Of a stretch of DNA of 64,000 bases, positions 9,101 through 48,100 are shown one piece after another; position 1 is the first letter of the stretch, and every line of letters begins with the position of its first letter. The DNA comes from Macrostomum lignano (Eukaryota). Below the pieces are notes generated by a model. The model was not told where the DNA came from and ran no database searches. It worked only from the letters and a program-made list of their open reading frames with translations. The position numbers were made by a program, and so were the translations under genes. The stretch covers positions 35,600 to 99,599 of the forward strand of contig NIVC01003401.1 of the NCBI GenBank assembly GCA_002269645.1. The letters are read 5' to 3'.

Positions 9101-12100
9101 ACATTGATCCATGAGAATTGATCCATGAGAATTGATCCATGAGAATTGACGCGTTGATCCATGAGAATTGACACACTGATCCAGGAGAATTGACACACTG
9201 ATCCAGGAGAATTGACACACTGATCCAGGAGAATTGACACATTGATCCATTAGAATTAACACATTGATCCATGAGAATTGACACATTGATCCATGAGAAT
9301 TGACACATTGATCCCTGACAATTGACACACTGATCCATGAGAATTGACACATTGATCCATGAGAATTGACACATTGATCCATGAGAATTGACACATTGAT
9401 CCCTGACAATTGACACACTGATCCATGAGAATTGACGCGTTGATCCATGAGAATTGACACACTGATCCAGGAGAATTGACACACTGATCCAGGAGAATTG
9501 ACACATTGATCCATTAGAATTAACACATTGATCCATGAGAATTGACACATTGATCCATGAGAATTGACACATTGATCCCTGACAATTGACACACTGATCC
9601 ATGAGAATTGACACATTGATCCATGAGAATTGACACATTGATCCATGAGAATTGACACATTGATCCATGAGAATTGGCACATTGATCTATGAGATTACCG
9701 ATCGGGATTAACGGCGATCGCGAACACCAGGGGCTGAGCGGTGGCCTCCACACCATCAATCGCGCGCCGTGACACCCATCGGTAAGCGGCGACCCCAGCC
9801 TCGGGCAGCAGGCGGATCAGCCAAGTTTCGCTCGGTTGCAATAGCGCTCTAAACGATTGCTCAGCGTAAATCTTCTGCCGCTGTAATTGCTGGTTGCCAA
9901 CGACAACAATAGTCGCCTTAGCAACGGCATAGTATTCGCCTAGCGGTTGGTTGCTAGGCAACAGATGCATTGTTGGCCAAACAGAGGGTCCAATTAACCG
10001 AGTAAAATTAGTGCCCAGATGACGTAATAGCAAGGTGTAGCTTACGGACTGGTTGCCATGGAAACCGCAGGTTTCAATTTCCGTATTTATTATTGGATGA
10101 AATACTAACGAACTACTGAGCTGATCGTGAAATCCAACAGGTATTTTCTGTCCGTCAATCAGAGTCTGAGACTTGGGATAGAGCACGAATTGTTCGGGCT
10201 CGCGACAGAACTGCTGGGCTGGCAAAGCGAACACGGGGCCGGCGTCCGACACTGAGAAGGGGCCAATGACTGCCGACACGGTCACAGTGTAGGTGCCGGC
10301 CCTGCAGTGAGCAGATGAGATACATATTAGTGACCTCCCTGTCTCCTTATGACCCAATCTTATCGATCGCATCTCCTTACAAATGCCATCTCTATATGAC
10401 CGCATCTGCTTATGACCCATCTCTATATGACCACATCTCCTTATGACCCTAACTCCATATGACCCCATCTTGATATGACCCCATGTCGATATGACTCCAT
10501 CTCGATATGACCCCATCTCCTTATGACCCCATCTCCTTATGGCACCATCTCCATATGACCCTATCTCCATATGACCGCATCTCGATATGACCCCATCTTC
10601 TTATGACCCTATCTCCATATGACCGCATCTCGATATGACCTCATCTTCTTATGACCCTATCTTCGTATGACCGCATCTCGATATGACCCCATATCCATCA
10701 CCCCATCTCCTTATGACCCCATCTCTTTATGACCCCATCTCCTTGACCCCAACTACTAATAATTGCAACAGAAATTCGAGCATTCATCACACCTTGAAAA
10801 ATTGTAGACAACTCTATTATGATACTCATCAGTTGAGGCGAAATACTGAACAACTCCGTCAAGCACAATGGACCAGTTGTACACGGCGCATGGAACGGCC
10901 GGGTCCGCCTGAATCTCCAGCGGCTGTCCAACTTGCACGGTTGAAAAATTCAAGGGCCTGAATGGGTGGAATCTGTGCAGCCTCACTGCCTCCAGTTGGT
11001 AGCAATCAACGCGACAGGTGGCGTTGGACACCTGGTTGCTAGCCGTGGCCTTGAGCCTGATGAGGAGAGGAGCAGGTTGGGATAACCCCTGGTAATTTTA
11101 TCGATTGATATTTTGAGATATCTGAGTCTTTATCGATTTTGAGATTGTGCAATTTTTAGGACAGACAGACAGACAGACAGACAGACAGACAGACAGACAG
11201 ACACACAGACTGACAGACAGACAGACAGACAGACAGACAGACAGACAGACAGACAGACAGACAGACGGACAGACAAACAGCTACATAAAACAGCATGGAT
11301 TATGGAAAGACAGAGCATCAATAACGCGCTTAGGCCAAATGAGATTCCATATACCGATCGCATTAGTCACACTTCAATCTCAACCAAGGCACTCAACTAC
11401 GCCACAGTGCACCGAAAAGCGCTGCACAATCAATCGCCTTCAGTGCAATGCAAACACTGAGCCTAGTAGTGAAGCACTCGCAGCTATTATATTTTTATGA
11501 CTCTAATACAGCGCGCTGACCCTAGCGGCAACGGGTGCAGTAATCATACTGTGGCCGGAAGAGTTCCCGGAGAGAGAGAGAGAGAGAGAGAGAGAGAGAG
11601 AGAGAGAGAGAGAGAGAGAGAGAGAGAGAGAGAGAGAGAGCGAGCAGCACACATCGGATGCAACGATTCGAGGCGGCCAGCTGAATTTACCAAATTTTTA
11701 TTTTAATTCAAAGCTTTGACGGTGGGCATATTAACAGTAATACTCGTAATAATAGTACCATTATAATTACTTATAATGCAATGCCCAACTCAGAGACAGA
11801 CTTGTCGGGGACCCAACTCAATGGACTGCATCAGTTGACTACGATATTAAATGTACAACAGCCAACCCTAGCCTAAGCAGTACTGCCCTAGCTGTAACCC
11901 TTGGTCATCCATCAGTGATGCAGGCAGGCCACACCGCACACAAACACACAGCCCTCCGACTGACCAGGCTCTGTATATCGGCATACAGAATCTCCTGGTC
12001 AAAGTGGCCAAAGTAGCTGGGTGGGTGAAAGATACGCATTAGCTGCTCCATATTATAAAGCTTATATATAAATCATATATGCGGGTTCTTTACACAAGGA

Positions 12101-45100: not shown

Positions 45101-48100
45101 TAGGTTGCTATGGACGCTAACTGGATCGGCCAAAAATCTGGTCAACAGACCAGAGTGACCCGACACAAGCAGCATGGGAGTGACAGCAAAGCCCAATTTT
45201 CCCGTAAAATTCACGGCAACTTGTGCAGAAGCCAGACAGCCAATTCGATCGTAATCAATGGCCGTCCATTTCTTAGAAACCATTTGATTGACAGATTCGG
45301 GCAAAAATTTCAACTCAACTGACAACGATTTGGAATTGTTTGTCTTGAAAACCAAATTCGTAACTAAGTCCAATTTGTAAACAATTATGTTGTTAGTGAA
45401 GGCAAATTTTGAACCATGATCACTTAGCAACCGCATAGTTACATTAGCAACCGATTGCGAGACTAAGTTAATAATTAGATTGGCAAATTCCGAATTTTTT
45501 CCATAGTTAAACTCGATTTGAACGACTTTCGAGCCTGGTCTGGTTGCCGTGTAGGTCTGCAAGTTTGAGTCAGGGGTATTGTTTTCGCCACATCAAGTTT
45601 ATGAAGATTCCAAATTTCGGAGAGATGATTTATTTCGCTTTAAAATTCATTAGCAGGACTTTCTAATCGTCAGGTATGTACAATCTCTGTGCCTTTGGGG
45701 GGGGGGGGTTGGCCCTCAGTGGCTACAATTGCAGAATACTCACAAAGTTACAACAATGTCCATCGCAGACGCTTCTATCCAATGATTCTTCAACATCAGA
45801 TCCGTTATCTAAACCTTCCAAATCGATAAATCGATAATTGATACGCACTGATTGGGCAGACAAAATCGATAATCTGTTATTTGAACAAACGGAAAATTGA
45901 TTAACAATTTTTGTGAACAACACAGTCGCAACAGGTGATTGATGAGGCGTATCGAGTCTGCTGCAGGAAGCAACAGGTTTTTGGTCGGCAGGCCTTTTAA
46001 CTAAAATTTTAGTCGAAGATTTTTGGACCGCTGATTCCACTGTCTGGTTGCTATGGTAACCAAGCTGGAGTAGCGTGACTGACAACGGTAGGTATGCTGA
46101 TTGAAACGGCTCAGACATGAGTAGCAGAGGGTCTGTGTGAGCCACTGCGAGTGGTCCAAGATCAGCTGATTCCACTTCTACACCTGAAATTTATTAGATA
46201 AAAATTTAACGCTAAATACTCCCAAATTTGGTGAATCTGATAGAATCCCATTTGGTGAATCTGATAGAATCCCATTTGGGGAATATTATGAAATCCCACT
46301 TGGGGAATATTATGAAATCCCATTTGGTGAATCTGATAGAATCCCATTTGGTGAATCTGATAAAATCCCATTTGGGTAATATTATGAAATCCCATTTGGT
46401 GAATCTGATAGAATCCAATTTGGCGAATCTGATAGAATCCCATTTGGTAAATCTGATAGAATCCCATTTGGTGAATCTGATAGAATCCCATTTGGGGAAT
46501 ATGATGGAATCCCATTTGGTAAATCTGATAGAATCCCATTTGGGGAATATTATGAAATCCCATTTGGTGAATCTGGTAGAATCCCATTTGGGGAATCTGA
46601 TAGAATCCCATTTGGTGAATCTGATAGAATCCTATTTGGTGAATCTGATAGAATCCCATTTGGTGAATCTGATAGAATCCCATTTGGTGAATCTGATATA
46701 ATCCCATTTGGTGAATCTGATAGAATCCCATTTGGGGAATATTATGAAATCCCATTTGGTGAATCTGATAGAATCCAATTTGGTGAATCTGATAAAATCC
46801 CATTTGGTGAATCTGATAGAATCCCATTTGGGGAATACGATGGAATCCCATTTGGTGAATCTGATAGAATCCCATTTGATGAATCTGATAGAATCCCATT
46901 TGGTGAATCTGATAGAATCCCATTTGGTGAATCTGATAGAATCCCATTTGATGAATATGATGGAATCCCATTTGATGAATTTGATAGAATCACATTTGGG
47001 GAATCTGATAAAATCCCATTTGGTGAATCTGATAGAATCCCATTTGGTGAATCTGATAGAATCCCATTTGGTGAATCTGATAGAATCCCATTTGATGAAT
47101 CTGATAGAATCCCATTTGGTGAATCTGATAGAATCCCATTTGGTGAATCTGATAGAATCCCATTTGGGGAATATTATGAAATCCCATTTGGTAAATCTGG
47201 TAGAATTCTGTCTTTTTGAACTATTGGACTTTTGGATTTTATGCCTTCTTTGAATTTTAATTTTTCGATAAAAAGAAGCATTAAAAAATAATAATAACTG
47301 TGAAAGCCAAAAAAGCGGTTTCAAGCAAGGCAGATTTGGTTCAGTGGGGCTGGGGGCGGATGGCGGTACGAGCTCAAAAATCTCCCCCTCCCCACCCTTT
47401 AATGATTTATTACTCAAACTGCGCGACGGCTGCACAAAAAATAGGAAAGACGAGAGATTGAGTAGAAGAAAAAAACAGCAGCAAGGGGGGAGGGGGCGGC
47501 CCGCAGCCGAAAAAGCAGACGAGATGCTGAAAGAAGAGAAGGCGCAATAAGAAGCAGAGGGAGGGGAGAGGCGGAGGATTAGACGGGTGAAGACTGGGGA
47601 CAGGCCCGGGGGGCGGGGACGGACAGGAAGTCGAAATCCTGATTTCATTTCCCGCGGGCTGAGAGAGGGACCCTCTGTATGACTGGTTGCCACCCACTCA
47701 CCTCCTCCCCCTTGAGTCCCGCATCTGGCAAAGCAATAAGTCTGTTCTTTTTCTCCAATTTATAAGGGCCATAATACACTGTGCTATGAGCTGGCCTTGC
47801 TACGTTGGTATTCCCTGTTCTGAATTCTTACAAGCCATATTGTTTAGAAATAGAAATCTAATCCTTGCAGAGGCAGAGACAGAAAGCAAATATGTAAGAT
47901 ATTTGATAGTTGAGCACTTTTTGAAATGCACAAATTCAATTATGACCGGCTGCGATAAAAAAGCGAGAGAGAGAGAGAGAGAGAGAGAGAGAGAGAGAGA
48001 GAGAGAGAGAGAGAGAGAGAGAGAGAGAGAGAGAGAGAGAATGGAAAGAAGCGAGGGTGACACAGGGAGAAAAGAGAGGGAGACACAGGGAGAGAAGAGA

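Follow-up and report, generated by a model that had tools for sequence, protein, structure and literature searches.

X-boxes consist of two inverted 6-base half-sites separated by a spacer of 1-3 bases, which in the 14-mer form is almost exclusively AT in C. elegans (bioRxiv 10.1101/2021.02.03.429678). A published consensus reads RTNRCC N1-3 RGYAAC (PMC2375033). Functional X-boxes have been described near promoters, with screens covering 1-3 kb upstream of the ATG (bioRxiv 10.1101/2021.02.03.429678; PMC2375033); known ones mostly occur singly, seldom in pairs, a short way upstream of the ATG. In Drosophila, the presence of an X-box is by itself a poor predictor of RFX control (PMC2375033). RFX genes are reported to be widespread in opisthokonts. 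In a planarian, S. mediterranea, an Rfx orthologue has been linked to cilia gene modules, the promoters of which are enriched in the Rfx motif (PMC12660999). Proteins of the polycystin family act in cilia, and in C. elegans the DAF-19M isoform lies upstream of the polycystins LOV-1 and PKD-2.

Two other kinds of regulatory DNA are relevant here. Exonic enhancers and dual-use codons ('duons') have reportedly been described by Birnbaum et al. in 2012 and by Stergachis et al. in 2013; the sites reported there are scattered, mixed ones found by occupancy, and the codon effect claimed for them is small and disputed. Developmental enhancers, which are non-coding, contain clusters of repeated sites for one factor.

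The minus strand of the window (the whole stretch of 64,000 nucleotides that was analysed) carries a WSC/PKD/REJ (polycystin-1-like) gene of Macrostomum lignano whose exons hold a cluster of X-boxes that is real and unusual. These sites share the sequence definition of the RFX X-box promoter motifs of C. elegans (DAF-19), Drosophila (dRFX), vertebrates (RFX1-4) and the planarian Rfx cilia module, i.e., inverted 6-base half-sites, a mostly-AT spacer of 1-3 bases, G1/T3 and A4'/C6'. The biology is also in keeping, with LOV-1 and PKD-2 in C. elegans and a polycystin-1-like gene here. In contrast to known X-boxes, about ten sites and many half-sites are found within coding exons, some 9-47 kb away from the gene start, and the promoter has none. 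As with duons, coding sequence holds putative transcription-factor sites and codon choice is measurably affected, but here one motif occurs many times in one gene with a strong codon and amino-acid bias. Likewise, several copies of one factor's site fall within a few hundred bases as in homotypic developmental-enhancer clusters, except that this array is written through an open reading frame.

The gene and its exons

The preliminary description had spoken of a polycystin gene, and membership of the polycystin-1/REJ family is borne out by UniRef names and Pfam domains. The gene's M. lignano models are named REJ, WSC and PKD domain-containing (P0001, 'REJ domain-containing'; P0003, 'PKD domain-containing'). 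Pfam PKD is found in the window's exons at 13.6-28 kb (E = 5.8e-7) and Pfam REJ at residues 521-627 of P0004 (E = 4.8e-7), a part of that model that falls outside the window. The gene's 3' end, where the GPS site, PLAT domain and 11 transmembrane segments of the family would be expected, is likewise off the window. Pfam did not find REJ in the large exon that the window does contain (43915..45567). The exons are as follows, in the order of the gene; extended half-site stands for GTTGCYA.

50340..55165, minus strand: exons 1-3, with signal peptide and WSC-like region; without extended half-site, and no X-box near the gene start
45745..46185, minus strand: candidate exon, frame open for 155 codons; covered by no protein model
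43915..45567, minus strand: large exon, REJ-like going by its UniRef name, with 10 of all 21 extended half-sites
39816..43398, minus strand: three candidate exons (43398-43168, 41207-40871, 40063-~39816) and satellite introns; splice phases chain correctly
13650..27986, minus strand: PKD-domain exons (27986-27609, 20579-20229, 15296-14796, 13874-13650); without extended half-site, internal control
8443..11055, minus strand: three exons (11055-10793, 10301-~9698, ~8759-8443) covered by P0003/P0004; second motif-rich block

The candidate exon at 45745..46185 has an acceptor (tttcag) and a donor (GTGAGT) in phase with both adjoining exons. A search of 1.8 billion proteins detected no homologue of the motif-rich exons in any species other than M. 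lignano, and protein constraint on them is therefore probably loose.

X-box sites in the exons

9912..9925: X-box-like GTCGCCTTAGCAAC, fits RTNRCC NN RGYAAC; encodes VAKAT
9950..9962: X-box 13-mer GTTGCTAGGCAAC with a spacer of one base; reads LLPSN on the coding (minus) strand; exon in P0003/P0004
10052..10065: X-box GTTGCCATGGAAAC; encodes GFHGN
39995..40008: X-box GTTTCCATAGCAAC; encodes VAMET; in the candidate exon starting at 40063
40921..40936: AGTTGCCATGGCAACT, perfect 16-base palindrome, an ideal X-box; encodes VAMAT; in candidate exon 41207-40871
43214..43227: GTTGTCATGACAAC, perfect palindrome, fits GTHNYYATRRNAAC; encodes CHDN; in candidate exon 43398-43168
43337..43350: half-site GCGGCTATAGCAAC
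44296..44308: X-box-like 13-mer ATAGCCCAGCAAC, fits RTNRCC N RGYAAC
44778..44791: X-box with one mismatch, GTTGGCATGGCAAC; encodes VAMPT
44957..44969: X-box 13-mer GTTGCTAGGCAAC; encodes LLPSN; 15 bases identical with the 9950 site
45084..45097: X-box GTTGCTATGGCAAT; encodes IAIAT
45104..45117: extended half-site GTTGCTATGG, 20 bases from the 45084 site; encodes VHSN
46047..46060: X-box GTTGCTATGGTAAC; encodes GYHSN; in the candidate exon absent from protein models

All eight full motifs of the preliminary description are present where it placed them, as are its half-sites at 45104 and about 43341 (here 43337-43350) and its partial site at 50312, which is intronic and lies 21 bases beyond the exon-3 donor. 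To these are added the sites at 9912, 43214 and 44296, each of which fits a published consensus, and weaker one-mismatch sites at 8457, 8664 and 9893. The sites are imperfect inverted repeats of two 6-base half-sites with a spacer of 1-3 bases. The spacer is AT at 10052, 39995, 40922, 43214, 44778, 45084 and 46047, and in 6 of the 8 spacer-2 sites found at one mismatch or less in a scan that left the spacer unconstrained.

The strict pattern GTTNCYNNRGNAAC has four matches against 0.25 expected, and its 13-mer version two against 0.22. The chance of about 1e-7 per position given in the preliminary description holds for a fully specified 14-mer only; for the degenerate consensus it is about 4e-6, with which the excess is still large. 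The pattern GTHNYYATRRNAAC (GTHNYY AT RRNAAC), the C. elegans-type X-box consensus, matches at five exonic loci and one intergenic one (11 strand hits versus 0.38 expected), and RTNRCC N1-3 RGYAAC at seven loci, all exonic, versus about 0.8 expected. With one exception, the loci from both X-box consensus patterns map to exons or candidate exons of a single gene on the minus strand.

Distribution between exons and other DNA

At one mismatch or less to GTTGCY N0-3 RGCAAC there are 12 sites, every one exonic. They fall in two motif-rich exon blocks, one at 8.4-11.1 kb and one at 39.8-46.2 kb; the distance from the first exon down to them is roughly 9 to 47 kb. Of the sites listed above or added to them, half-sites included, four lie at 44778-45117 and four at 9893-10065, two of the latter being weak (9893, 9912). 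The eight motifs first listed had all been placed in exons; this is so in protein-model exons for 9950, 10052, 44778, 44957 and 45084, while 39995, 40922 and 46047 lie in candidate exons only, i.e., in long open frames on the minus strand that chain correctly in splice sites and phase but are absent from the protein models. The companion claim, that no motif occurs elsewhere, stands at one mismatch or less, but not for looser matches outside exons: on one strand, the intergenic GTACCTATAGGAAC at 59214 conforms to the C. elegans-type consensus, and there is a near-match at 58829.

Tandem repeats take up 33 kb of the window, so that the contrast between exons and introns is weaker than it sounds; the fair comparison is between 6.6 kb of exon and 24.4 kb of other unique sequence. 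In the latter, GTTGCYA occurs six times, which is the random rate, and half-sites there are without the YA extension. Within the gene span, unique sequence outside the exons amounts to 15.8 kb and contains no site at one mismatch or less, and the gene start (54.8-55.5 kb) none at two mismatches or less. The existence of these 15.8 kb weakens the earlier rationale that exons must host the enhancers since the introns are repeat-filled. All counts come from one gene, whose motif-free WSC and PKD exons argue against the site density being a genome-wide trait of M. lignano coding sequence.

Enrichment over shuffled sequences and codon bias

In an unbiased ranking of words, the most over-represented 6- and 7-mers of the exons are X-box half-site words, GTTGCTA being seen 13 times versus 1.2 expected (p = 5.6e-10; Bonferroni-corrected p ~2e-6). 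The 10 sites at one mismatch or less compare with 0.13 expected from codon permutation, 1.5-1.7 from a synonymous shuffle and 3.0-3.3 from a dicodon shuffle, which preserves the protein, codon usage and boundary dinucleotides and reached 10 in none of 2000 runs. For GTTGCYA, 21 copies were observed against 2.4, 6.3 and 8.5 under the same three models, and 21 was reached in 0 of 3000; this excess persists with model-supported exons alone. Codon-preserving shuffles, proposed earlier as a check, thus leave the motif far above expectation (10 sites versus at most 3.3), and the earlier argument that protein-level selection is insufficient holds, since shuffles that keep protein, codons and dinucleotides give 3.3 and internal paralogy is absent.

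The bias can be followed at individual codons. Val in Val-Ala is encoded by GTT in 15 of 23 cases, versus 39% gene-wide, and Ala in Ala-Thr by GCA in 6 of 16, versus 16%. A site at one mismatch or less is compatible with the protein at 25 positions, versus 9.6 +/- 3.3 after residue permutation, and 10 of these 25 (40%) are realised, versus about 6% expected. Given the excess of sites over codon permutation and shuffles, codon choice and amino-acid sequence therefore both lean towards the motif, a bias that exceeds what protein and codon usage predict, as would be expected of dual-use coding sequence.

The motifs are written in all three codon phases, as first described, and in both orientations about equally on the coding strand (GTTGC 23, GCAAC 19). 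No self-similarity or internal paralogy was found in the protein, DNA self-matches being confined to the motif, and RNA hairpins at the sites are weak and inconsistent. Taken together, the three phases, both orientations, AT spacers, lack of paralogy and weak hairpins point to recognition of double-stranded DNA.

Possible readers of the motif

These exons probably double as regulatory DNA. The account that we favour, and hold with about as much belief as doubt, is that selection keeps exonic X-boxes that are read by an RFX-family factor and tie the gene to the RFX programme. In the two exon blocks, selection would maintain about ten palindromes of the X-box form GTTGCY-N1-2-RGCAAC together with a dozen extra GTTGCYA half-sites; their likeliest reader would be an RFX-family winged-helix factor bound to double-stranded DNA, and the exons would then form an intragenic array of RFX sites that may link expression of the gene to a programme of ciliated cells or sperm. 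Of the dual-coding proposal made previously, the cluster itself stands, as a real one in a polycystin gene, in three phases and beyond what the protein explains, while its rationale from repeat-filled introns is weakened. Counted against RFX are the exonic position of the sites despite the unique non-exon sequence available in the gene span, and their distance of ~9-47 kb from the first exon with none near the gene start. A more far-reaching version, which we consider rather improbable, is that satellite turnover in the introns has left exons as the sole long-lived unique DNA, and that a lineage-specific, loosely constrained polycystin-1-like ectodomain has been rewritten, in codons and residues, as its own RFX-responsive array.

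The dispute over whether transcription-factor sites constrain codons and proteins arises from the small size of the reported effects. Here, one well-defined motif occurs about ten times in one gene and its effect is easily measured, both at the codon level (40% realised versus ~6%) and at the residue level (25 permissive positions versus ~10). Should RFX bind these sites, dual coding would be seen here with unusual clarity, in a gene of the polycystin family that offers many candidates for direct RFX binding. It would also bear on gene regulation where introns are fast-evolving satellites. If the more far-reaching version is true and other ciliary or sperm genes of M. lignano are built likewise, exons would routinely carry cis-regulatory code within their coding sequence, and a transcription-factor motif would shape protein sequence far more strongly than has been claimed for dual-use codons. 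Transgenesis and RNAi are feasible in M. lignano, which makes a test by synonymous recoding practical.

A reader of GTTGCYA or of the palindrome on double-stranded DNA other than a transcription-activating RFX would account for the same statistics: a boundary or anti-silencing factor, for instance, or one that slows the polymerase and aids exon recognition. The confinement of the sites to exons between long satellite arrays, far from the promoter, and the many isolated extended half-sites beside full palindromes would suit such a factor. However, the full sites are closely RFX-like (AT spacer, 13-mer variant, positions 1, 3, 4' and 6'), no other factor with such specificity could be named, and the WSC and PKD exons, equally flanked by satellites, are without the motif, which speaks against general exon marking; we therefore see this as possible but unlikely. 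A role at the mRNA level, be it as a small hairpin or as an element for splicing or stability, has a very small probability in our view. The sites are indeed exonic and the perfect copies can form hairpins of 5-6 base pairs, but these are weak, at -1.5 to -6.6 kcal/mol; the palindromic fold is adopted by only about half of the sites, and few z-scores stand out. Moreover, deviations from the palindrome are uncompensated (10052, 39995 and 44778 each break a pair), and on the coding strand isolated half-sites point either way, unlike what single-stranded recognition would give.

That the enrichment is incidental to protein sequence or codon usage, or due to chance, and was picked out by scanning for striking motifs, is strongly disfavoured and scarcely probable. 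Three peptide classes do recur ([VI]A[MI]xT, xH[GSD]N and LLPSN), and the protein sequence by itself lifts the expected number about 12-fold above that from codon permutation; yet the shuffles never reach the observed counts, the three classes are unrelated and share one palindrome in three phases, and the motif heads a word ranking that was unbiased, in a protein without internal paralogy. Highly improbable, too, is a mutational process that makes short palindromes, by templated correction or local conversion, with the likeness to X-boxes being incidental. Inverted repeats are in mild excess in the exons (41 versus 21-26 in shuffles with 5-base arms, 29 versus 12-17 with 6-base arms), but such a process leaves the isolated GTTGCYA half-sites and the AT spacer unexplained. 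The insertion footprint or conversion suggested earlier is weakened by the unrelated flanks and by lengths of 13 and 14 bases, which are not multiples of three, and GTTGC is the sole arm that recurs (three perfect copies), every other arm occurring once.

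Gene and exon structure

In BLASTP, with gaps counted in the identity figures, the large open frame at 43778-45592 (minus strand) matches two UniRef entries of Macrostomum lignano at 93-94% identity; one is named 'REJ domain-containing', the other 'WSC domain-containing'. Further exons lie under protein models of the same species or are proposed from open frames, as follows.

Exons of the gene in the window
55165-54866, 54213-54088, 50519-50340 and 45567-43915; minus strand; exons under the REJ/WSC-named M. lignano protein models
11055-10793, 10301-9698 and 8759-8443; minus strand; exons under two other M. 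lignano protein models ('PKD domain-containing' and 'REJ domain-containing')
46185-45745, 43398-43168, 41207-40871 and 40063-~39816; minus strand; candidate exons, long open frames with canonical splice sites

The models on exons 11055-8443 run on past the window edge. No protein model spans the four candidate exons, whose splice sites chain in phase with one another and with the model-supported exons. Among them, the frame at 45745-46185 (minus strand) is open for 155 codons, is bounded by good acceptor and donor sites and agrees in phase with both flanking exons. The UniRef gene models lack it and the collections searched contain no matching protein; we regard it as a probable exon, either unannotated or alternative. 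Within the exons from 13.6 to 28 kb, Pfam recognises a PKD domain; the REJ domain it recognises is in the portion of the longer downstream model that lies off the window. Given the UniRef names, these Pfam domains and the chained exons, the gene is polycystin-1/REJ-like and is represented here by its extracellular portion, the transmembrane portion lying outside the window. Of note, the exons rich in X-box motifs (8442-11097 and 39811-46185) have no detectable homologue beyond M. lignano, and the PKD exons between them are those recognised by Pfam.

X-box sites in the exons

The X-box, a palindrome of two inverted half-sites (in this gene GTTGC, or GTTGCYA in extended form), is the site of RFX factors, DAF-19 in C. 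elegans. Each of the eight motifs listed in the preliminary description was found again at its position. The strict pattern GTTNCYNNRGNAAC has 4 matches (0.25 expected) and its 13-base form has 2 (0.22 expected). Further consensus patterns were chosen independently of the window sequence. GTHNYYATRRNAAC, the C. elegans-type X-box consensus, matches at six loci, with 11 strand hits where 0.38 are expected. RTNRCC N1-3 RGYAAC, a restrictive Drosophila X-box pattern (PMC2375033), matches at seven loci, the expectation being about 0.8 matches. Combined, the two consensus patterns define ten in-gene loci (9912, 9950, 10052, 39995, 40922, 43214, 44296, 44957, 45084 and 46047). Position 44778 adds a site with one mismatch, and a single match, at 59214, is intergenic. 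In a scan for GTTGCY and RGCAAC around an unconstrained spacer, with at most one mismatch, the spacer is AT in 6 of the 8 sites with a two-base spacer; for the X-boxes of C. elegans, AT is reported to be the spacer in nearly every case (bioRxiv 10.1101/2021.02.03.429678).

The 13-base X-boxes at 9948-9962 and 44955-44969 share the same 15 bases (GTTGCTAGGCAACAG), each encoding LLPSN, within otherwise unrelated exons. The intergenic match (59214-59227, GTACCTATAGGAAC) fits the C. elegans-type consensus on a single strand only, and a near-match is found at 58829-58842 (GTTTCTATAGCAAT); both positions fall in the stretch that separates the LINE from the next gene.

Excess over composition, codon usage and protein sequence

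Null models were applied to an exon set of 6639 bases (2212 codons), whose observed count of sites with no more than one mismatch is 10.

Sites with at most one mismatch expected in the exon set
Codon permutation: 0.13
Synonymous-codon shuffle, protein kept: 1.5-1.7
Dicodon shuffle, also keeping codon family and boundary dinucleotides: 3.0-3.3 (0/2000 reach 10)

The earlier claim that protein-level selection cannot explain the motifs is upheld by these shuffles, even the highest expectation remaining well below the observed count. Likewise, GTTGCYA occurs 21 times against 2.4 (codon permutation), 6.3 (synonymous) or 8.5 (dicodon) expected; in 3000 shuffles a count of 21 is never reached, and the excess persists when only model-supported exons are kept. 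Codon choice visibly leans to the motif: GTT-GCN encodes 15 of the 23 Val-Ala pairs, GTT making up 39% of Val codons, and 6 of the 16 Ala-Thr pairs have GCA, versus 16% gene-wide. The protein sequence leans to it as well: 25 of its positions could accommodate a site with no more than one mismatch, against 9.6 +/- 3.3 after residue permutation, and 10 of the 25 are realised. The concern that the motif was chosen post hoc is answered by ranking every 6- and 7-mer blind to it: X-box half-site words come out on top (GTTGCTA: 13 copies, 1.2 expected, p = 5.6e-10).

Distribution along the gene

All 21 in-gene extended half-sites fall within two groups of exons, at 8.4-11.1 kb and at 39.8-46.2 kb, and none in the signal/WSC or PKD-domain exons; the motif is therefore not a general property of the codon usage of this gene. 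Exonic GTTGC half-sites are followed by Y in 35 of 42 cases and then by A in 25 of 42, whereas those of the other unique sequence (24.4 kb) come without this extension, GTTGCYA occurring there in six copies, i.e., at the random rate. The mismatch scan finds no X-box near the first exon. That sites are exonic because introns are filled with repeats, as was suggested at first, is an insufficient explanation, since 15.8 kb of unique non-exon sequence within the gene span contain no site.

For the large exon, the homologue search finds just two near-identical M. lignano models, and for the concatenated downstream exons and for exon 3b it finds none; a full scan with HMMER, over 1.8 billion representative proteins, returns M. 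lignano entries only. This absence of outside homologues fits a loose protein constraint, which would give room for a DNA motif.

Half-site spacing displays no clear helical or nucleosomal periodicity. Same-orientation pairs 18-23 bases apart, or about two helical turns (8585/8608, 45015/45033, 45084/45104 and 45427/45447), are too few to judge.

Nature of the signal and possible reader

Recognition on double-stranded DNA is favoured by several observations taken together. As previously described, the motifs occur in all three codon phases, coding-strand sites giving three peptide classes ([VI]A[MIK]xT, x-H-[GSD]-N and LLPSN). Half-site orientations are nearly equal (23 and 19), and departures from the palindrome lack compensating changes. 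There is no self-similarity at the protein level and DNA self-matches end at the motif, which excludes an origin of the sites as diverged copies of internal repeats. Predicted RNA hairpins are weak and inconsistent, no more than about half of the sites folding as the palindrome, which leads us to reject them as the main cause and to give an RNA-level explanation small weight. Inverted repeats with 6-base arms are in mild general excess in the exons (29, versus 12-17 in shuffles), yet only the X-box arm, GTTGC, recurs, contrary to a general palindrome-making process; a mutational origin accordingly carries little weight, as does a compositional one, set against the shuffles and the motif-free exons.

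The best-supported reading of the exonic array, to which we give about an even chance, is a regulatory one: selection would maintain the palindromes as putative binding sites of an RFX-type factor, and the exons would double as an intragenic array of such sites. A different DNA-level reader or role is rather unlikely; to our knowledge, none of NFI, C/EBP and Myb fits the full palindrome with its AT spacer. Polycystin-family proteins are ciliary, and the C. elegans polycystins LOV-1 and PKD-2 act downstream of the DAF-19M isoform. In the planarian S. mediterranea, promoters of the cilia gene modules to which an Rfx orthologue is linked show enrichment of the Rfx motif (PMC12660999). In Drosophila, however, motif presence alone predicts RFX control poorly (PMC2375033) and, unlike all described functional X-boxes, which are near the promoter, the M. 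lignano sites are far from it.

The motif, the RFX factor family and the idea of exonic regulatory sites are already known. Our literature search turned up neither X-box clusters in coding exons nor any work on RFX in Macrostomum, and no description of a dense one-factor site array running through coding sequence and strongly shaping its codons and residues. The case concerns a single gene and its candidate sites.

Other short inverted repeats are present in the exons, X-boxes aside (14948, 20331, 44358, 45137, 45893, 46000 and others). A second palindromic word, ATCGAT, is also over-represented there (45822-45835 ATCGATaaATCGAT, 44268, 44895, 44987, 45865, 8811 and 27789, for instance), AATCGAT having 8 copies against about 1.1-1.6 expected; elsewhere, ATCGAT has 6 copies in unique intronic sequence and 31 in satellites.

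Introns and upstream neighbourhood

Tandem repeats make up 33 of the 64 kb of the window (TRF masking). Introns are nearly all tandem array, with a repeat unit that differs from intron to intron; within 1-55000, periods range from 4 to 62 bases and arrays reach 5.3 kb, leaving the exons as small islands of unique sequence amid satellites.

Example tandem arrays
116-5462
12226-13311
16110-17352
18056-19076
32518-34800
41515-42647
50659-52735

A LINE-type reverse transcriptase is encoded at 57136-58023 (plus strand; Pfam RVT_1, E = 1e-24), in a GC-rich block (55400-58200; 65% GC across 56-58 kb). This block lies upstream of the first exon at a distance of some hundreds of bases, which leaves very little promoter sequence.
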